From Setoptus koraiensis (lineage: Eukaryota > Animalia > Arthropoda), in the NCBI GenBank assembly GCA_048013815.1, contig CM106585.1, positions 21,204,001 to 21,268,000 on the forward strand: a DNA stretch of 64,000 bases. The letters run 5' to 3'. The position numbers were made by a program, and so were the translations under genes. Shown here one piece after another: positions 5,157-60,900 of the stretch. The notes beneath the pieces are model-generated. The model was not told the DNA's origin and did not search any database. It saw only the letters and a list, made by a program, of their open reading frames with translations. Position 1 is the stretch's first letter; every line of letters starts with the position of its first letter.

Positions 5157-8100
5157 TGTCGTGTCGTTGCTGTCGCTGTTGTCGTCGTGTCGGTGTGCTC
5201 GTTGTCGTTGTCGGTGTGTCGCTGCCGAGTCAGCGGTCGCATAGCCAACAATGAATGAACCAATGAATGGGTGTGTGTTCCGCGGGCCAGGTGAATGAGA
5301 GTTTGTGAATGAGTGTGAGAGCGATCATTATCTTGCTCTGTGATTCTAATTATAATCTTGAGTCGCTCTCAGCTGTTGCTACTCTCATGCAACCAGATTG
5401 TTTATGTGTCACAAGTGGCCATGATAACACTAACCGTGACAATACAAGCTGCTGCTGCTGCCTCTGCTGGCCAAACCATGAAAACAACAATAACAATAAA
5501 ACTATGAAATTCATAAAACTGTCCTCTGTCGACACAGGCGTCGCCTATAGCGACCCCAGCTCGAGCCACAGCTAAATGATGCGATGACATTAATTGAATT
5601 AATTGTATTAATTGTATTAATGAACTCAGCGCCACCGCCACAAAACGGCCCACGCAGCACCTATACTAAATATAGGTTAGCTGCAAGCTCGCGTAAGACG
5701 CTTGAGATTCTCAAGTTGAGAGATAAGAGAGCGATGAGACCATTGGACGCGATTCTCAGGCTCGGCCGATTCGCCTTCATCCGGGCACCTTTTACGACCG
5801 CACGGCCCATTGTTTGTTTGTTGGTCGCACTCCGACGTTTGACTCGCACTCCGACGTTTGACTCGCAATCTGACATTCGAGCCGCACTCTGAGACTCGTC
5901 GCGAGATGAGGCCGACTGATTAGCTTGTGTCCACTATTATAAATTATGGCCACTGCGCGGCCATTTGTTTGTTATGTTTGTTTATGTGTCCACTAGTCCA
6001 TGGAGTGTTACGCAATAAACAGCTGATCAACAGCGGCCAATCAACAGGTGAACTTGATCAACTGGCTGGCCGTGCTACTGATGCTGACGTAAATGCAAAT
6101 GAGCACTCGGTGCAACGGCAGCAGCACACATTGTTGGCCAACTTGCAAATTGTCCTACTAATAAACAAAACTCATCCGATATGCTGCCGCTACTCACCGG
6201 CTCTCGGGTGTAATATCTGCCTGTTATCTGGCCATCTTGCTCTGTGCGCCGGTTTATCTGGCCGCCGGTTCATCTGGCCGGCTCGCCAAGGGCCGGCTTG
6301 TAATGGGCCGACAAATGGGCCGCCAAATGAGCCGGCCAGCGCCGCTTAATTGGCTGGCGCGTCTCGTTGGCTTGTACGTTCGAAATGCTGCGACCGGCGA
6401 AAGGCGATAGGCGATTCGCTTCGAGTGCCTCGGGCCGAATTCGAGCAACGACGAATGGGCAGCATCGCATATCGCATAATTGTGCAAGCTTCTTTTCATC
6501 TGTTCGTCTAAAATCGTGATATCACACATTATTTGTTGTTGTGTCTTGTGCTGCCTACCGGCTACTGCTCTCAATGAACAATTTAACCAATATTACATAT
6601 AATATATTGCCTATGGTATGGGCAGTGGTAGCTCGTGCGACCACTGCCTCCGTAATGCCATAATGCAGATCCATGGCCATACAATGGACTCCATTGAATG
6701 GAGTATGGTCACCAAATTGGAGCCCGACCGGCCGCAACCTGGCTACAGCGCATACATTAATTGTGAATACGTCCAGTGGGATCATACTCGCCAATGGCAA
6801 CCAGCTCAACGACGAGGCCAATGATGGTGGCTAAATTGTTAATTAGCAAGTGCGAACGAAAGGGGAGTCCGATCACGATTGTGTGTCGATAACATAATAT
6901 ACGTAATATGACAACATGGCAATGATGTAATCGCGCGTTGTATCGTAAATCGTGTTGTTTTATCGCCATGGTATTATCCTGCTCACTCCTACAATGAACC
7001 CACTGTTTCTCACTCCTCCAACTAAAATTGTCTGAACACCGATACTCAGCGATACTCACAAGCGATACACAACCACGGAGAAGCGTTTCGAGTCTCGCCG
7101 AGTATACGCCGACGCCGCGAATTCTCGATTCGCGATTTCAGTTCATTTATCAGCATTCGGGCCGCTTGTTTCATCGATTCGACGACGGCCGTTGCTGTTC
7201 ATTGAGCGCCAGATAACATTAAATTAATATTACCAGCATGTTAACAACAACTGTGCCACAATTAATTGTTGTTCAACCTAATGGTAATTAATATCACTTT
7301 GTCCACTATTATTGCGCGCCACGCTGGCCGGCCATTCAAGACGCCACAGCGCTGCCAAAACAAACAACTAATGACGATATTAGCATTTAAATTGAATCTA
7401 ATCTCTCTCGCTGCCGTCGAGTCTGGGCCATTTCGGCGCCTCAGCCGTTTCACTTTGTGTCCGTTTCACTGTGAGTTTGTTTCACTGTGAGTTTGTTTCA
7501 CTTTGTGTCCGTTGTGCTGAAACTAAAGCCGTCCTACCAGCCAACAACTAGACGACGAGATACCAGCGCAGATATAACGCGACGCAAGCCACTAAAATAA
7601 ACAAGCGCTTGTGTGTAATATGATTTTTTTGCCGATCTTCATGTTGCTGGCTCGCAATGGAGCTGCCTCGAACACTCGAGAACTCGGGAACTCGAGAACT
7701 CGAGCGCTTCTGAGCCGCCGATTGGCCACCATATGCGCTCGTCACGGCCTCAAAAAACTGCAGTTAACTGCATTAGCCACAGAGAAGCGCGACAAAAACA
7801 ACATAAAGCAGCATCTCGCACCAGATATTCAAGTATGTTATTCAAGTTATTTGCATAGTTGTTCAAATCGCGGCATCGTCGTATCAAACAGGCAGCTTCG
7901 TGCTCGTCACTGCTGGATATAACTGACTGGATATTCGCAATTGGAAATTTGTCAATTTGTTGGCCTGGCCACAATGCTTGTTATTGTTGCGCTTGCTTTT
8001 TTGTTGGCTTCTCCGCAAATCCAAATTGATTTCCATAAATGATTTAATCTTGGCCGGCGCGACGGCCAGCGCCTGTGCATGTGTCGTGGTTGCATATATA

Positions 8101-51534: not shown

Positions 51535-52034
51535 NNNNNNNNNNNNNNNNNNNNNNNNNNNNNNNNNNNNNNNNNNNNNNNNNNNNNNNNNNNNNNNNNN
51601 NNNNNNNNNNNNNNNNNNNNNNNNNNNNNNNNNNNNNNNNNNNNNNNNNNNNNNNNNNNNNNNNNNNNNNNNNNNNNNNNNNNNNNNNNNNNNNNNNNNN
51701 NNNNNNNNNNNNNNNNNNNNNNNNNNNNNNNNNNNNNNNNNNNNNNNNNNNNNNNNNNNNNNNNNNNNNNNNNNNNNNNNNNNNNNNNNNNNNNNNNNNN
51801 NNNNNNNNNNNNNNNNNNNNNNNNNNNNNNNNNNNNNNNNNNNNNNNNNNNNNNNNNNNNNNNNNNNNNNNNNNNNNNNNNNNNNNNNNNNNNNNNNNNN
51901 NNNNNNNNNNNNNNNNNNNNNNNNNNNNNNNNNNNNNNNNNNNNNNNNNNNNNNNNNNNNNNNNNNNNNNNNNNNNNNNNNNNNNNNNNNNNNNNNNNNN
52001 NNNNNNNNNNNNNNNNNNNNNNNNNNNNNNNNNN
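51535..52034. other. Assembly gap (500 N)
   Basis: Run of N. It hides the end of the retrotransposon ORF and the expected PPT and 3' LTR. Confidence 0.99.
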
Positions 52035-53532
52035 ATACCACTGTTGGAAAACACTTGTGTTTGATCACCAAACCGATCAGGAATAGGCATACTGCAATAG
52101 CGACGTATGCACCTATCATCTCTATAAACCATTTGATGCCCCTGAAGACTGGCACCAGGAAGAATTCTTTCCTGGTCAGAGCCTCAGTCCTTTCTCTGTG
52201 GGCCTCTTCGTTCGCCTCCTTTTTCAATGTTTCGATCTCGTCTGCCGTGAGGCCGCTGAATTCCGTGTTCGATACTCCCAACATTAAGTTCAATTGCGTC
52301 GGGATCGAGTAGTCTACAGGTGGGGCTTTTACACTCGAGGCCTCGTGTGTAAATTCGATATAACCCTCGATGCTGAATGCTTGACTTTGGTGCAGCGAGA
52401 AAATGTTGTTGGGACATGCCCTCTTTTTGCCCTCAACCACAATGTAATGGCCTTGGCAATTCATGTGTATGGTCTGGCCCAGATGTTTCACTTGTGGCTT
52501 TGGCGCAGTCAATTCCGTCTTCTTTAGGCCTCTACAGTTGTCTTTGTAATATCTTCTGGAATCCTGATATATTCTCCGATTCATACAGCTATCGGTGAAT
52601 ACCACATCGCCCTGGACTTCGCCCACATCTAGTGCGCGGGCGCAGTTGGCTGTTTTGTTATACATCATGTACATGGGACCGGAGTAAATGTATTTGCAAA
52701 TCTGGTCGTCTTCAACTGATGTATAATGAAAAGGATCAGCCATCAGGATCTCCACATTCTCTGATGGTTTTAACATGGCAAGTTGTACCTTCACTCGATT
52801 TTCTTCCACTAGCTCGCAATTTATGATTGAAGAATGCTTGAGCGAGGCTTTCTCAGCCAGTTCGTCTAGGTTGAACAGTTGCAGGAGCTTAGCAGGTACG
52901 TTTTCTCCGGATTTCAATTTCTTACGGAGTGCTTTTAGGATGTCCTTCACTTCTTCAAACTTTATATAAGCTTGGAGTTGAGCATCTGCGATCTCTGGTT
53001 GAATGCTCTGTGTTGCCAGAAGAATGTCTATTTCCTTTTCTATGTCGGAGATTTTGCTGCTTACTCTTGAATTCAACGATGCCACTATCTTCATGGTATT
53101 CAATAATTTTTGGTCCAGTTCAATGGTCAATTGTTTCAACACCATCATATCGCGTTGACTGTGTTTGTGGTCCACTTCTTTCATAACGCGATGGGCTGTT
53201 AATACAACCGCAGACACAGCAGCAACCACTGTGCTCAGCCCCATGTCTCGCTCTACGATTTTTCTTTCTTCACACAGTTTTCTAACATTTTCCGTTATTG
53301 ATGCATTAAATCTAGTGTTACACACTCTAACCAGGTCTTTGTTTAGCTTGGGAAACGCAGTCAAATTTCCGAATAATTGCCTGCAAGGGTTGTGAAACAG
53401 CAGGTCCAATTCCAGATCCAATTGTCCCTGTATATGGCTAATTTTTGTTGGTCGCCACACTACCAGGTCATCCACCCCAAAGTCCGTTGTGGTTAAAACT
53501 TGAATGAATAGACATGTGAACAAGAGGCTGGC
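52035..53532 (-). other. Env-like type I membrane glycoprotein domain fused downstream of RNase H (~500 aa)
   Basis: Signal-like hydrophobic stretch, second apolar peptide, heptad-like region, 10 ectodomain Cys, 3 N-glycosylation sequons and a C-terminal TM segment at ~52131-52063. Confidence 0.7.
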
Positions 53533-56500
53533 CAAGCCTATCTTCCTTAGCGCAGATGCATGAGTTCGCGGCGGTAGGCCCTTGGTCATTATGTCGGCTA
53601 ATTGATGGCTTGACGGTACGTATTCCACCTCTATTTCTTTGTTCTTAACTTTCTCTTTTATGTGATGGAACTTGATGTCTATGTGTCTTGTTAGTTTAGA
53701 TGGTGCACTGTTGTTGATTAACTTTATAGTTGACTGATTGTCGATTCGCAGTAACACCGGACCAACGGTGGGTACTTCTATCTCTTGTAGGAGTGACTTG
53801 ACCCAGATCAGTTCTTTTACTGCTGCGCTCGCTGCAATATATTCGCTCTCAGTTGAGGACAACGCCACAGTTGATTGCAGTTTACTGCGGTACATAACGG
53901 GGGAGTCATTTATCAGCACCATCGTGCCACTGGTGGAGCGTCTGGTTTTGATGTCGCCCCCCCAGTCAGCATCAGAATAGCCGATAAGACTCAAAACTCC
54001 ACCCCGTTTGAACTGAAGACCGTGGTTCATCGTTCCCTTCAGATACCGCAAACAATATTTAGCCGCTTCCCAGTGTTTTGCACGAGGTGCATTGTTGTAC
54101 TTCGATAGCACGCTCACAGCATATGTAAGGTCAGGGCGGGTGAGACAGGATGCATAGTTTAAGCTGCCCACGAGTTCCCTGTATGGGACGCTTACTATCT
54201 CATCCGTGTCATCAAGCTGGCTCAGATGATCCACATCTCTGATAGGTGTGCTTGTTGTCTTAGCGTCTTTCATATTGAATGCCTCTACAATATTTTCTAT
54301 GTAGTGTTGTTGATGCAGTACAATTGATGTGTTTGTTTTGGATATTTCAAACCCGACAAACACGTCTGTCTCGATGACCTTGACATTTACAACCTTGTCA
54401 ATAGCCCTAATAAGGTCGTTTAGCGCTTTGACGTCAGTGGCTGCCGCAATCCCGTCATCTACATAGACCATTATTATTATCTTGATGCCATTGTATTTGC
54501 CAATATACAGACATGGGTCTGCATGGGTTGCAACAAAACCCAGTCTGATTAGCATCTCATCTAGTTTGGTCTTCCAACATAAGGGTGCTTGTTTAAGACC
54601 GTACAAGCTTTTGTGCAACCGTAGTACTTTTCCCTCGGGGCAAGTCACGCCTTCGGGTGGAATCATATAAATTTCCTCGTTCAGGGCTCCGTTCAAGAAA
54701 GCAGTTTGAATATCGAACTGTACAAATTTCAAGTCAAAGTGAGCAATCACTGCAAACAGAGTTCTAATTGTTTCATAGGTTACCACGGGAGAGTACGTGA
54801 ACTCATAGTCTATGCCGTACTGCTGCAGGAACCCTCGGGCTACCAACCTAGCTTTGTACCGATCGACTTGACCGTCAACTAGCTTTTTCTTGCAGAATAC
54901 CCAGCGAGCCGTCAACGGTCGTTTGCCGTTTGGAAGATCCGCTATAGTCCAGGTGCCATGTCTTTCGTGTGCAGAGAGCTCCTCGTTCACAGCTCCTTTC
55001 CACAGTTCGCGTTCATTTGTTGACATCACATCAGCATATGAACGAGGTCGCACGTAGGCACTCTTTAAATGAAAAAAGCCAGATATGCCTCCTTTTGTTT
55101 GCTTTTGGATCTTATCGTACTTCGGGGTGTCTTCAAGAGACTTTAGGAAAGTGCTGTTTGTAGGTCGATCAATTGACCGGTTGTGGTACTCGAGAAGCGT
55201 CTCGAAAGGCGGTACATGTATACTTTCTGGATCAGGTTGTGTGGTCTGAAGGTCGTTATTCGCTTCCTCTGCAGACTTGGACGTTTGACCTTGAGGTTCA
55301 AGTGGTCGGTCCTGGAAGTTTTCATCACATGATACCTCGGGACTTGCAAGTCTCGCAGGTTCGATCATAGGATTGTCTGTAGGCGCTGCATCATATATCT
55401 CAGTGCTATCAGTGTTGACAGTGGTGTCGTGTTCATTTCCATTGTCATTTTGCTGAAGGTCAATAGTTTGTTGTGGTCGTGATGGAATGTTTTCATCTTC
55501 AACAACTAGAGAGTCATATGTCTCGTCCAACAGTTTGTGGTGATTTACAAACATAACGTCACAACTTAGTCTAACTTCATTTGTAGAGGGAATGTACACC
55601 CGGTAGGTGTTGCTTCTGGAATCAAAACCGACTAGGTGAGCATTCAAGGTCTTGCTAGACCATTTCGGGTTCCTTCTGGTGGTCTCCAGTATCTGGATTT
55701 CGCGGCCAAATTCGTGGATATGGGCGATAGATGGCTTGCGGTTCGTCCAGACCTCGAATGGAGTTTGCTTTGGATCAGGGGAGCAAGAGGTCCGGTTGAG
55801 GATGAAAACTACAGTGTTGACTGCTTCGGACCACAAGGTCTTGGGCAACTCTGTCGCATTCAGGATCGTCCGTGCAAGCTGTATAACGGTCCTATTGGAC
55901 CGTTCAGCTGCACCGTTTTGTTCCGGTGTATATGGCGTGCTAGTAACGAGTTTTACATGTTCCAGAGCGAGAAGACAACGAACTTTCTCGTTTAGGAATT
56001 CGCTTCCTTGGTCGGTACACATTTCTCTGATTTTTCGTCCGGTTTCGCTTTCCGTCGATGCTATAAACTGGCCCATCTTTTCGCAGACTTCAGTCTTGGA
56101 GCTTATACAGTAGACGGCGCGGTAGTTAGAGCCCTCGTCGGTGAACAGGATGAAGTAGTTACTTCCACCCAGGCTTGTTGGATTGATCGGGCCCACCAAA
56201 TCAATATGTACTCTCTGTCCGACTTTGTTTGCTCTCTCTCGCTGTGAAGTAGGATGAGAGGATCGCAGTCCCTTGCCGGTTGGACAGGAGCTACACTTCG
56301 TATACTCGCCCTTTGGAACTAGCGATATACCATTAACAATGTTTTGCTTGGCCAGCTGTTGAATTCTTCTTATATTGATGTGAGCTAAGCTCTTATGCCA
56401 GTCCTCTATGGTGCGATTTTTCTTGATGAGAAAGGCTGTCTTTCGGATTGGACGAATATCCATCTTGACCAGTTCAACCGTTTCGTCCAGTAGGCCGTAG

Positions 56501-57672
56501 GCAACCTTGTCACCATTCATTTCAAAACTGCATTCGTGCAATTGGTCGAACACAACTCTTACTCCTTTCTTCATTGCTTGCACTATAGACAACAAGTTGC
56601 TGTCTATGCCAGGTACGTGTAGTACGTTGGTAACTTGAATTTGTTTGACGTCTCCGTTTTTTAGGCGGCTTTGAAATATAATAGTACCCATTCCAGCCAC
56701 CGGGAGGGCGGTTCCGTCACCAACCGTCACGGTCATTTCATCATCTACTTTATCATAGTGTGTAAAGTAATCTCGGTGTTTTGCAACGTGTGCTGATGCG
56801 CCCGAATCGGCCCACCAGTCGTGTTCGGAAGTATCACTGTGGATTTTAACCATGAATGATATGTTGTTCCTGGGTTCCTGGTTCCTTCTCTTATCCTGGT
56901 TTTCTGCAGGCCTTTTCAATTCATTTTTACAGTCTTTGGCCCAATGGCCTTTTTGTTGGCACCTCATGCATGTAGATTTGCTCATCATTTCAGCAAAATC
57001 TTCAGGCGATAAGCGCTTCTTCTGCTGCTTGTTGTGTTTCTGCGGTTTGCCACTGGTCTGTTGAGCGATCAGTGCCTGGTTCTTCGGGTTCGATTCTGAG
57101 TGTTGCATTTGATTTTCTTCCTGAAACAACATTTCAATGAGCTTTCTATAATCTTTCTCCACTGTCTGATTCCAGACTCTTCTAAAGTTTGCATATCTGC
57201 GGTTTAAACCACCTAGCAGTATGGCTCGCTTGAGTTTCTCGTTGAGCGGTTCACCCAGCGTAGCCATCCTATCGACGTTTTCTTCGTATTGGGCGATATA
57301 ATTACTAATACTTTCGGACTCACCCTGCTTAGTCGTTGCCCATTTTATAATACACGTTTCCAAGTGAGCGTCACCATCTTGTTCGTACTCAAGACGGAGT
57401 CGATTCCAGATATCGCGGGCACTAGTACATGTCAATATCTTGCTAACTATGTGTGGCTCCAAAGAGCTGGTTAGAAGATCTCCAGCTTCTTCTTCTTTGT
57501 CGATGATTTGTTGTGGGTCAAGGTCGGTGCTATCTTCATACACTACTGCTTGAAGTTTTCTGTAGGTCAATTTCTTCTTTATCGAATACTTCCATACTGG
57601 ATAGTTCTTTCCATTCAGTTTTAGTATGGAGGTGGTGCTTTTGCTTGAGGTGCTAGGTATGGCGACTTCCAT
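52035..57672 (-). CDS. Copia Gag-Pol-(Env-like) polyprotein, at least 1879 aa, no stop before the gap
   Basis: LNGKNYPVWK (gag). Zn knuckle CMRCQQKGHWAKDC at 56970-56929. Protease WWADSGAS at 56817-56794. WHKSLAH...C..C pre-integrase. Integrase VHIDLVGP at 56211-56188, TDQGSEF and PEQNGAAER. RT YVDD at 54465-54454. RNase H YSDADW at 53979-53962, ESEYIA, IDNQS and QLADIMTK. Confidence 0.96.
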
Positions 57673-57717
57673 ACTAGGTAGTTCTTTTTGGGGTTCGACG
57701 TTCGATAGCTTCAGCCT

Positions 57718-57732
57718 GTTTGGCTGTTAACC
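57718..57732 (-). promoter_or_regulatory. Primer-binding site GGTTAACAGCCAAAC, complementary to the tRNA-Asn(GUU) anticodon arm
   Basis: Directly abuts the LTR end (TTCAACA|GGTT). The plus strand reads GTTTGGCTGTTAACC versus GTTCGGCTGTTAACC in metazoan tRNA-Asn as recalled. Confidence 0.78.
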
Positions 57733-57938
57733 TGTTGAAGCTATTTTAACGTTTTTGTTGTATTTTATTATAGTATATTGTAGTATATTGTAGTATATGA
57801 AAAGTAAAGTGTAAGTAAAAATTAAGCTGCACAGAGCTTTTATATCGGTGGTCCACCCTGGACAATCCAGAGTGCACCATAAAGTAGGACAGCAATTTTT
57901 CCATAGGAGGCGGGCGTGCGCCGGTTGCTACTCCAACA
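57733..57938 (-). repeat. 5' LTR, 206 bp
   Basis: Minus strand starts TGTTGGAG and ends CTTCAACA (7/8 inverted termini). TATAAAAG at 57844-57837, AATAAA at 57769-57764, and three tandem TAGTATATTG-like units. Confidence 0.88.
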
Positions 57939-60900
57939 GGGTGGCGCACGGTCTCAACAGCGCACGCTGCGCCAAAATTGCCGAAATGGGCGCCCCAGCA
58001 TGCGGCACAGGCGAGCGAGTCGCTCAGAGCGAGTGAGTGAGTGATGGACGAAATAGAGCAGACAGACGGACAAACATAAAATATTCGATGCGACTGTCGA
58101 GCCGGTCGAACGGATGACGACCCAGCGACTGTGACGAGCATGAGCAGCGCCGTGACGTTGATGATGATGGTTTGATATCGAGCGCGGTCCGTCGGACGAC
58201 AACGGCAGCGGCAACAGCGACAACAACGACAACAGCAGCAACGACAACAACAGCAGCACCAACGACGGCCAAGTTAAACTTGTTAATAGACGTCGCTGCA
58301 ACTAATGGCCGCTTCGTCTGGCGTGCCATTTTGACGAGGCGCCTCCCCCGTCGGCCCAGCGCGGGTTGCGGGCCGAAAAATGTTCGCCGCACTAATGCAA
58401 CTACAATGCCCGTGCGTGCGTGTGCGTGTGTGCCTGAGCGTGTGCGTGTACGTGGACACAAGTGTGCGTGTGTGCGCGCGCGTAACAAGCGCTCGCTCGT
58501 TTGTGCTGTGTGTGTGTTTGTCGCTCGGTTTGTCAGCCTGACAACAACAACAGCGACGGCAACAACAGCGACGGCAACAGCGACGGCAACAACAGCATCT
58601 CCTCAGTGTCTATCATGATCAATAGTCGTCGTCGCTGTTACGGCCAACAAGCGAGCGCTGGCAATAAAATTCTTTGCCTCTCGCTCTATCTCGGCCATCG
58701 CCAGCTCACTGGCGAACTCACTGGCGAACTCACTGGCAAACTCACCAGTCGGCACACACAGCAGCCACCGGAGCACATCAAACGAGCTCGCAGAGGCGCA
58801 TCCTTTGTGAGCCGCTGCTGCTGCTGCGTGCGTTTGATTGAATGGCTCACAAAAATTAACCATTTATCAAAGATGACATTTCATCAATCATTAACATTCA
58901 TTATTTGCTACCCAAATCAATTTCAACCATCAATCAATTGGAGCTGCGCGCATCGCCGACAGCCCCTTTCTCTTTGCTCTCCCTCTGCACTGAGAGTCTG
59001 TGCCTCTGTACTACAGAGTCTGTAGTAGAGGGTCGGCACTGAGAGTCGCTCTGTCTCGGCTGCAAAGTGCGTTTCCTATTCCAGCGCGGCCCGCCGACCA
59101 CCGTGGGCACCGCTCGCGCCGTTCGGGGCACACATCGGGTACCCCTCTGACAGGCGCGACAGCAGCACACAACAAATCCGGGCGGCAAATGATGCGCACA
59201 ACGTGTGCGCCACTGTCACACTCAACTCTTGGTCTGAGGGGGGGGGGGCCAAGGAGGCTTGCGCACCGAATGTGCGCCTGTTTTGTTGCGCAACGCGCTC
59301 GCATTGTGCAATCACAAATGTGTGTGCACAATGCGACGTTGCTTAGTTGCCAGTGCGTCCGCTCACTTGTCAGTGCGCTGCCAGCGACTGTTCGGCGGCC
59401 ACTGTTTGGCGGTGACTGTTCGGCAGTGACTGTTCGGCGGCCACTGGCCAACGGTGACTGGCCAACAGCGCGTGCATCAGCTGTGTGCGGCAAGGGTTAA
59501 GTGGGCGACTGTCAGCTGATCGCAACTGTCAGACGGGGCGGCGGCGCATGCGCGTGGCCCCGCGGCCTGGCCTGGCGAAATTAGCTGTGTCCAGTGTGTG
59601 CGCGAGCGAAGTGTGCGGATGACAACAGTGCATTCACAGTTGTCAGTGTGCTCAGCTGTGTACAGGGTGTGCGCAAAAGACGGTCGCTGGGGGCCCGCGC
59701 AAATTTGTGACGGCGCGCGGCCAGACCGGGCCGGCCGGTGCGAGCGCCGGCTAGGTAATCAGTTGTTGTTGTTGCTGTTGGCTGCTGTTGTCATGATTTG
59801 GTTTGATGTTGTCATTAATCAATCAAGCAAACCAAACATGAGAGCCAGCAGCCTAAAACAAACAAACAAACGGACAAACAAAGCTGCTGGCTCAATGCGC
59901 TGTCAGAGCGCATTGTGTCCTGTTGTGAGTGCCCATTGCGAGTGTCTCAAGCGTGTGCACTCGTAGTGGCCAGTGTTTGTCCACTTTCGGGCCGTCGTCT
60001 CGTCTGTCCGCTCGTCCGTCTGTCCGCTCGCCCGTCTGTCCGCTCGCCCGTCTGTCCGCTCGCCCGTCTTGTCGTCCGGCCGCCGCGCCGCCATGAGTCA
60101 TGGTCGGCGGCGGCCAACAAGCGCGCACTGGCCAACGCGCCGCAAGGCGCAGCGCCCCCCAAACGAGAGATAAAAAAAGATATAAATTAGACGGCGAGAG
60201 AGTGGCCAATTTTCAAGTCTCCAGTGACATAGAATAATTATTGTTGTAGGCAAGCGCGCATGCAGTGGATAACTTTTGCAATGTCAAATGACGATGATTT
60301 AATGCTCTGCCGTCTGGGCCGGCCGCTGGCCGGCGCATGGCATCGCATCGCGGCGCATGGCATCGCAACGGCGCTCCGATCGACCGATGACGCCGAGATG
60401 ATGCATCACCGATGCGCTCGTCACGTTGACGCGCCTCCGTCGGGCTGTCGCGACTCGCGAGCATGCCCGCACTTGTGCGCAGCGGCGCCCGTTGGCCGGC
60501 CTGTCCGCGGGCCCGCCGTGTGACAATGCGCGTATGGGCGAGCTGCCGAGTGCGGGCCAAGGTGCGCCCGGCCGCCGAGAGCCGGTGACGGCGATCAGGG
60601 CCAAGGATGGCGCGCGGTGACGGCGCGCACAGCAGCGCCGGCCAGCCCCAGCCCCGCGCCGCGCCGCACCGCAACCACAGCGACGGCAATGACAAACAAC
60701 AGGCGCCGCCATTGGGCCGCGGCGGCGCTGCGCGCCGGCCATCAATCTAAGCCAACTCTTTGTCGGGCGGCCGCCGGGCCGTGCGGCCGGCGCCCTGGGA
60801 GCCGCCGCGTCCGGCCCGCTCTGTTAGCGCTCTGTCAGTGCGCCCGGTAAGCGCATCTCGGCGGCGCCCGGCCCGCTCTGTTAGTGGCAAGGCGGCGCTC

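Follow-up and report, generated by a model that had tools for sequence, protein, structure and literature searches.

A 15-nt sequence in the genome of Setoptus koraiensis is likely to be the working primer-binding site (PBS) of a young Ty1/copia element of the hemivirus type that would be primed by a 5' fragment of tRNA-Asn. The element lies on the minus strand of the window, the whole stretch of 64,000 nucleotides analyzed in this study (contig CM106585.1, positions 21,204,001 to 21,268,000). A direct read of the plus strand revealed GTTTGGCTGTTAACC at 57718-57732 and TGTTG at 57733-57737; in the sense of the element, the LTR end ...GCTTCAACA is joined to GGTTAACAGCCAAAC with a spacer of 0 and no TGG. 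For the 15-mer with two or fewer mismatches, 0.12 chance occurrences are expected per window. The initial annotation had described this arrangement, namely an LTR that ends in CAACA and is followed without spacer and without TGG by the PBS, and the direct read bears it out. Because the LTR is not followed by TGG, a PBS of the tRNA 3'-end type was excluded, which also disposes of a better match to the 3' end of another tRNA, the alternative that the annotation had named.

The features of the locus were as follows.

57939..57943, no strand assigned: candidate 5-bp target-site duplication GGGTG, adjoining the LTR edge, with the other flank inside the assembly gap.
57733..57938, minus strand: 5' LTR of 206 bp, TGTTG...CAACA, with its outer edge taken from contigs and its inner edge from a perfect 5-nt inverted repeat.
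57837..57844, minus strand: candidate TATA box TATAAAAG in the putative U3, read from the sequence.
57764..57769, minus strand: candidate polyadenylation signal AATAAA, approximately 30 nt before the LTR end, read from the sequence.
57718..57732, minus strand: PBS GGTTAACAGCCAAAC, the complement of linear nt 27-41 (standard nt 26-40) of the host tRNA-Asn(GTT).
57673..57717, minus strand: leader of 45 nt from the PBS to the gag ATG, containing GGCUGA.
52036..57672, minus strand: single open frame of 1879 codons with its ATG at 57672, without a stop and running into the N gap (open reading frame list and Pfam).
57094-57519, minus strand: gag (Retrotran_gag_2, Pfam).
56923-56973, minus strand: zf-CCHC (Pfam).
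56560-56817, minus strand: beta-barrel of the protease region (Pol_BBD, Pfam).
55924-56448, minus strand: integrase (rve, Pfam).
55540-55746, minus strand: SH3 (SH3_retrovirus, Pfam).
54241-54954, minus strand: reverse transcriptase (RVT_2, Pfam).
51535..52034, no strand assigned: assembly gap of 500 N, hiding the end of the open frame, the polypurine tract, and the 3' LTR.

The Pfam domains followed one another in a single frame in the order Retrotran_gag_2, zf-CCHC, Pol_BBD, gag_pre-integrs, rve, SH3_retrovirus, and RVT_2. This is the gag-protease-integrase-RT/RNase H order with the copia-type gag and RT that characterizes Pseudoviridae (Ty1-copia). Beyond RVT_2, the pol frame continued for approximately 735 codons without a stop to the N gap (52036-54240, minus strand), and Pfam named no domain in this part; the open frames of two sister families, L043 and L044, comprised 2116 and 2181 codons, respectively. 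The positions of TATAAAAG and AATAAA agree with those anticipated for U3/R signals. The LTR also contained three tandem 10-nt units, ATATACTACA, ATATACTACA, and ATATACTATA, at 57775-57804 (minus strand), which separate the TATA-like box from AATAAA.

The LTR search detected no LTR repeat within the window, which is attributable to the 500-N gap rather than to a true absence of the second LTR. The edges of the 5' LTR were defined by other means. A 6671-nt contig of the public run X1 represented a circularly permuted form of the element, running from 55935 to 52400, then through 1102 letters that close the gap, and then from 57938 to 55906. Such a permutation is the product of an assembler that collapses two near-identical LTRs. 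It puts the outer LTR boundary at 57938; contigs broke exactly at this position in runs X1 and X2. On the plus strand, CAACA at 57934-57938 and TGTTG at 57733-57737 form a perfect 5-nt terminal inverted repeat. The inner edge of the window copy is thus placed by this inverted repeat and by analogy with sister families, and is to be read as probable. The LTR boundary proposed earlier was retained on these two grounds. With the 1102 letters of the X1 contig between 52400 and the start of the LTR, the internal part amounted to 6435 nt and the whole element to approximately 6847 nt.

The PBS was unchanged in the contigs of four public runs aligned over 52400-58399, which represent at most three separate samples. 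Runs X5 and X6 had identical pieces and are possibly a single data set submitted under two names, and the window itself may have been assembled from the sample of run X1, so that the contig evidence is not independent support. At the outer LTR edge, runs X1 and X2 also yielded a 1439-nt contig that fused 57938-58253 (with 7 mismatches) to 1123 letters foreign to the element. This junction contig was deeper than the element contig, and the assembly graph forked at 57938. The junction could, as an unconfirmed possibility, be an empty-site allele and hence mark a polymorphic insertion. When the assembly was searched at the DNA level, the LTR-PBS region matched only the window copy, and the internal region matched only two RT pieces, which were 83% identical.

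We searched the assembly, which was covered in two pieces totalling 48.76 Mb, for the tRNA that might serve the element. A pattern search found the exact 15-mer four times, namely at the window site, in element L010, and in two tRNA-Asn(GTT) genes. Both genes were called by ARAGORN, measured 74 nt, and scored 70.1 bits against the Rfam tRNA model; they were located on separate contigs with unlike flanks and T-run terminators. In our judgement, the tRNAs of the host are metazoan in appearance. The PBS matched both at 15 of 15 positions, at linear nt 27-41. The anticodon occupied nt 35-37, and the match ended 4 nt past it. Because the D-loop of this tRNA comprises 9 nt instead of the standard 8, linear nt 41 corresponds to standard nt 40. 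The match therefore spans base 26, the 5' strand of the anticodon stem, the entire loop, and C39-C40, and the next tRNA base, A42, mismatches the last base of the LTR.

The initial annotation had counted 14 matches in 15 because it compared the site with a TTCGG/CCGAA stem. The anticodon stem of the host tRNA-Asn is TTTGG/CCAAA, and the PBS carries the same TTTGG variant and not TTCGG, which accounts for the complete match. The host tRNA thus possesses the arm that the proposal required. The copia-like register that had been claimed (GTT-AACC) also holds against the host genes, and elements with a site for half of the initiator tRNA (iMet-half elements) pair up to standard nt 40 as well: the iMet-half site of L056 matched the host tRNAi-Met genes over 14 nt and ended 4 nt after CAT, at standard nt 40. 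The arms of tRNA-Asn and iMet have 9 of 14 positions in common, including the 3'-terminal UAACC.

In the manner of the hemiviruses, the PBS directly follows the 5' LTR, is complementary to an internal anticodon stem-loop, and pairs up to nt 40. The element departs from that group in the identity of the putative primer, the partner being tRNA-Asn(GTT), whose arm agrees with that of iMet only at the 9 positions mentioned. The paired stretch of tRNA-Asn includes two modified nucleosides, queuosine (position 34) and t6A (position 37), which could hinder pairing. The tRNAi-Met likewise has t6A37, yet it serves copia.

On this basis, we propose that the primer would be a 41-nt 5' fragment of the host tRNA-Asn(GUU) with its 3'-OH on standard nt 40, produced by a putative cleavage of the tRNA after this nucleotide. 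This nucleotide is the second base on the 3' side of the anticodon stem. The last 14-15 nt of the fragment (the 5' strand of the stem, the anticodon loop, and C39-C40) would pair with the element RNA right after U5, and reverse transcriptase would extend the fragment through U5-R into strong-stop DNA. This would be the geometry in which tRNAi-Met serves Drosophila copia and yeast Ty5. Mispriming, with the primer then copied into the PBS, may account for the change from iMet to Asn, a route that the similarity of the two arms would permit. The earlier proposal that the PBS implies half of a tRNA-Asn as the primer is supported by the exact complementarity, the register, and the sites shared across the genome.

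The spread of these sites was determined in the 48.8-Mb assembly. The 14-nt core GGTTAACAGCCAAA occurred 22 times, compared with approximately 0.4 expected occurrences, an approximately 50-fold excess. Two occurrences were the tRNA genes, and the remaining 20 were sites beside LTR ends, each placed directly after a sequence ending in ...CA or ...TA and surrounded by unrelated flanks. All of these sites were antisense to the tRNA and contained just 14-17 nt of it, and copia gag or pol was located downstream in 15 of the 20. The comparison across copies that the initial annotation had called for thus returned a core common to 20 genomic sites, in addition to the unchanged contigs of the public runs.

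A check independent of the PBS used the gag protein of the window element as a query and retrieved 30 copia gag loci. The exact core was located 20-560 nt upstream of gag in 15 of them. Five loci (L051, L056, L058, L060, and L065) carried the iMet-half site GGTTATGGG(C/T)CC in the same register; the PBS of these lineages is of the classical type (GGTTATGGGCC...). One locus (L061) carried TGGTAGCAGAGC, which corresponds to the iMet 3' end and is of the GalEa/Ty1 type, and two (L066 and L070) exhibited CA followed by TGG(T/C)GTCAGAAGT, a tRNA 3'-end type. The remaining gag loci were truncated.

LTR pairs fixed the position of the site in two further families. In L019, the LTRs measured 197 bp and were 99% identical, and in L015, they measured 175 bp and were 100% identical; in both, the match to the 3' LTR ended on the base before GGTTAAC. 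No LTR pair was obtained through the search coordinates for L020 and L013, whose upstream flanks were other repeats, and none was found for L038 and L040. An LTR pair in L041 was assigned to a different, outer element. This other LTR element extends over L041:943-8173; its two LTRs of 647 bp share 97% identity and are separated by 6.6 kb, and the truncated 5' end of an Asn-type copia is nested in it at 5531-5544.

Another composite arrangement was observed at L010:1490-1560, where two element 5' ends stand head to head with 22 nt between them. The first reads ...ATCAACA followed by GGTTAACAGCCAAACGC, which matches tRNA-Asn over 17 nt. The second, which is inverted, reads ...CCAACG followed by GGTTAACAGCCGAGC, and its stem part is nearer the TTCGG form of tRNA-Asn; a tRNA-Asn gene of the TTCGG form was not found in the assembly.

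The families that carry the core are strongly diverged. Their gag identity to the window element ranged from 21% to 45%, and the terminal branches in a gag-PR-IN tree of the families of this genome measured 0.5-2 changes per site. The LTR ends and leaders could not be aligned among families, yet the 14-nt core was invariant. By analogy with retroviral replication, this invariance fits a PBS that would be recopied from its primer in each cycle. The tree contained two Asn-type clades: clade A, comprising the window element, L043, L044, L045, and L047 (support 100/99), and clade B, comprising L055, L057, and L062 (support 99/96). The iMet-half and 3'-end types fell between them, and clade A adjoined an iMet-half element with a support of 81/82 in this tree, which holds the families of this genome and no named references. 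The topology requires two changes for the Asn type; the AU test of a single Asn clade returned p = 0.058, a value that neither favors nor rejects one origin.

We further examined the leaders for additional complementarity to tRNA-Asn. Over the 30 nt that follow the PBS, the 4-mer TAGC occurred most often (in 9 of 17 independent leaders) and AGCC second most often (in 7 of 17), and a TAGC or AGCC(GA) box recurred in the leaders of L016, L025, L045, L047, L054, L055, L062, L068, and L071. A 5-mer complementary to nt 1-27 of tRNA-Asn was present in 12 of the 17 leaders; across 2000 shuffling trials, the number averaged 4.35 and never exceeded 11, and the host iMet control gave 3 of 17. The matches clustered on nt 13-23 of tRNA-Asn, that is, on the D-loop and the 3' strand of the D-stem, which belong to the 5' half of the molecule. 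In the window copy, GGCUGA could pair weakly with nt 16-21 through two G.U pairs, and pairing of its U5 or leader with nt 1-27 was not above that of shuffled sequences. The box would be an argument for tRNA-Asn that does not depend on the PBS, and it hints at a bipartite pairing of primer and template; it is offered as a lead because the motif was noticed before it was tested and the families are related.

Three other explanations of the site were weighed against priming by a tRNA-Asn fragment that ends at nt 40. The least credible is that the 15-mer has no function and resembles the tRNA by coincidence, or because part of a tRNA gene was picked up where the element inserted. The match is short, which is the one point in favor of this explanation, and we consider it extremely improbable given a 14-mer that is over-represented approximately 50-fold, that is invariably in antisense orientation to the tRNA, directly behind an LTR end and with copia gag downstream, and that brings with it 14-17 nt of the tRNA between otherwise unrelated flanks. 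A quite different possibility is that an intact tRNA-Asn or its precursor anneals to the element through its anticodon arm without being the primer. Its role would then be in packaging, dimerisation, or silencing, for instance through heterochromatin guided by tRNA or pre-tRNA, and DNA synthesis would start in some other way, self-priming being one example. Pairing between pre-tRNA and the PBS does silence Drosophila LTR elements, including copia (PMC13537249), and the primer molecule is deduced here from sequence. The position of the site nevertheless makes this explanation unlikely: in three families with defined LTR edges, it occupies exactly the place of a PBS, with no spacer after U5, and no alternative TGG... 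PBS follows the LTR. In every family, complementarity ends at nt 40, as it does in the experimentally proven cases of copia and Ty5 (as cited in PMC1181622 and PMC10886601), and strict invariance is what is expected of a PBS copied off its primer in every cycle.

A tRNA-Asn fragment might also prime with another end. The tRNA would be cut elsewhere and trimmed, or an unpaired 3' tail would be removed by RNase H or another nuclease, and the cleavage geometry shared with copia, as the initial annotation had put it, would then be merely apparent. Complementarity indeed marks the end of pairing and not the end of the RNA, and with A42 mismatching the last LTR base, pairing could extend no further in any case. 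A primer requires a paired 3'-OH, though, and the last paired base is the same at each of the 20 sites despite differing LTR ends, with the iMet-half lineages stopping at the same standard position. This variant was accordingly rated as very unlikely, and priming from nt 40 of a tRNA-Asn fragment is retained as the preferred reading.

Relatives were sought in other samples. A large protein search returned 1162 matches, the two closest of which were 44% and 42% identical, and the Asn-type PBS was not found outside this genome among the matches of the protein search, of which nine contigs were examined. Four relatives with long open reading frames from other samples (33-34% identity) exhibited ACA followed by TGGTAGCAGAG, which corresponds to the iMet 3' end. 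A Logan contig from another sample (L082:1-60), whose protein was 38% identical, had a leader nearly equal to that of the L016 family (ATAGCGAATAAGT...). At its PBS position, after ...TTCAACA, this contig carried CGTTATCAGCACGA, a different 14-mer, which looks like a swap of the PBS between relatives. L081 had no recognisable PBS, and the upstream sequence of L083 was too short for the PBS to be typed. Among metagenome contigs, a single-protein query recovered only relatives of 26-28% identity with uninformative PBSs.

Half-tRNA priming has been known since 1986; to our knowledge, the step that makes the fragment and the rules of tRNA choice are still unknown. The present genome holds comparable copia lineages with sites for iMet halves, Asn halves, and iMet 3' ends and thus provides a comparative set for primer switching. 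The two half-primers have identical five-base 3' termini, located at one and the same tRNA position, which narrows the recognition requirement of the cleaving activity. For annotation, a large share of the copia elements in this genome will escape PBS finders restricted to tRNA 3' ends or to the iMet half.

A wider reading of these results can be framed, which we regard as speculative and on balance rather improbable. One host activity would cut ANN-reading tRNAs after nt 40 and leave ...A37-A38-C39-C40-OH on every copia half-tRNA primer. The Asn lineages would descend from iMet-half ancestors through a switch in a single replication cycle, in which a tRNA-Asn fragment misprimed on the site that it matches at 9 of 14 positions and was copied into the PBS. 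The second box of the leader would later have stabilised the association by pairing with the D-loop of tRNA-Asn, giving a bipartite primer-template complex. If this reading were true, sister lineages with three primer types would constitute a natural system for finding the tRNA-cleaving step.

The initial annotation had suggested, as an unverified point, that an Asn half-primer might be new. This suggestion is weakened: tRNA-Asn-GTT has been inferred once as a primer among fungal Helenus elements (Kojima 2024, PMC10886601). Our literature search did not turn up Asn half-priming in any animal copia, a weak negative given that subscription journals and Repbase notes lay mostly beyond its coverage.

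[quoted passage not shown] The window element resembles copia and Ty5 in its Ty1/copia gene order, in a PBS that adjoins the LTR, in a complementarity of 14-15 nt to the anticodon arm that ends at standard nt 40, and in the 3'-terminal UAACC of the putative primer, and iMet-half relatives coexist with it in the same genome. It differs from both in pairing with tRNA-Asn(GUU) instead of iMet, with 5 of 14 PBS positions changed, and from classical copia in a single open frame that is far longer (at least 1879 codons).

Among plant lineages, Osser, Bryco, and Gymco-II use half of tRNA-Met and Bianca uses half of tRNA-Ile (Neumann 2019, PMC6317226). As in the present genome, half-tRNA priming in plants is confined to the copia superfamily and the type of primer is characteristic of the lineage; unlike here, the plant half-primers are only Met and Ile, and the listed tRNA-Asn is of the 3'-end type (PMC6317226). 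The fungal copia FunCo1 has a PBS complementary to an internal region of tRNA-Lys (Donnart 2017, PMC5445492) and thus shares with the window element an internal site of a tRNA other than Met, although the tRNA and the host kingdom are different.

In Puccinia Copia and fungal Helenus, most PBSs are of the anticodon-loop type and correspond to iMet, Tyr, Ile, and Asp (Kojima 2024, PMC10886601). The likeness to Helenus TRIMs and Puccinia Copia extends to the evidence, the primers having been deduced from sequence in those elements as well (PMC10886601). The Asn case of Helenus concerns a single non-autonomous lineage of a rust fungus and is not explicitly of the anticodon-loop type in the part of PMC10886601 available. 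Here, by comparison, the Asn-type site is used by many autonomous families in two well-supported clades of an animal genome. These findings suggest that the window element joins the known class of half-tRNA-primed copia elements, as an observation that is confirmed and with a predicted mechanism that is well supported by sequence evidence; what sets it apart is the abundance of the Asn type in this genome, the presence of iMet-half sisters in the same register, and a possible D-loop box.
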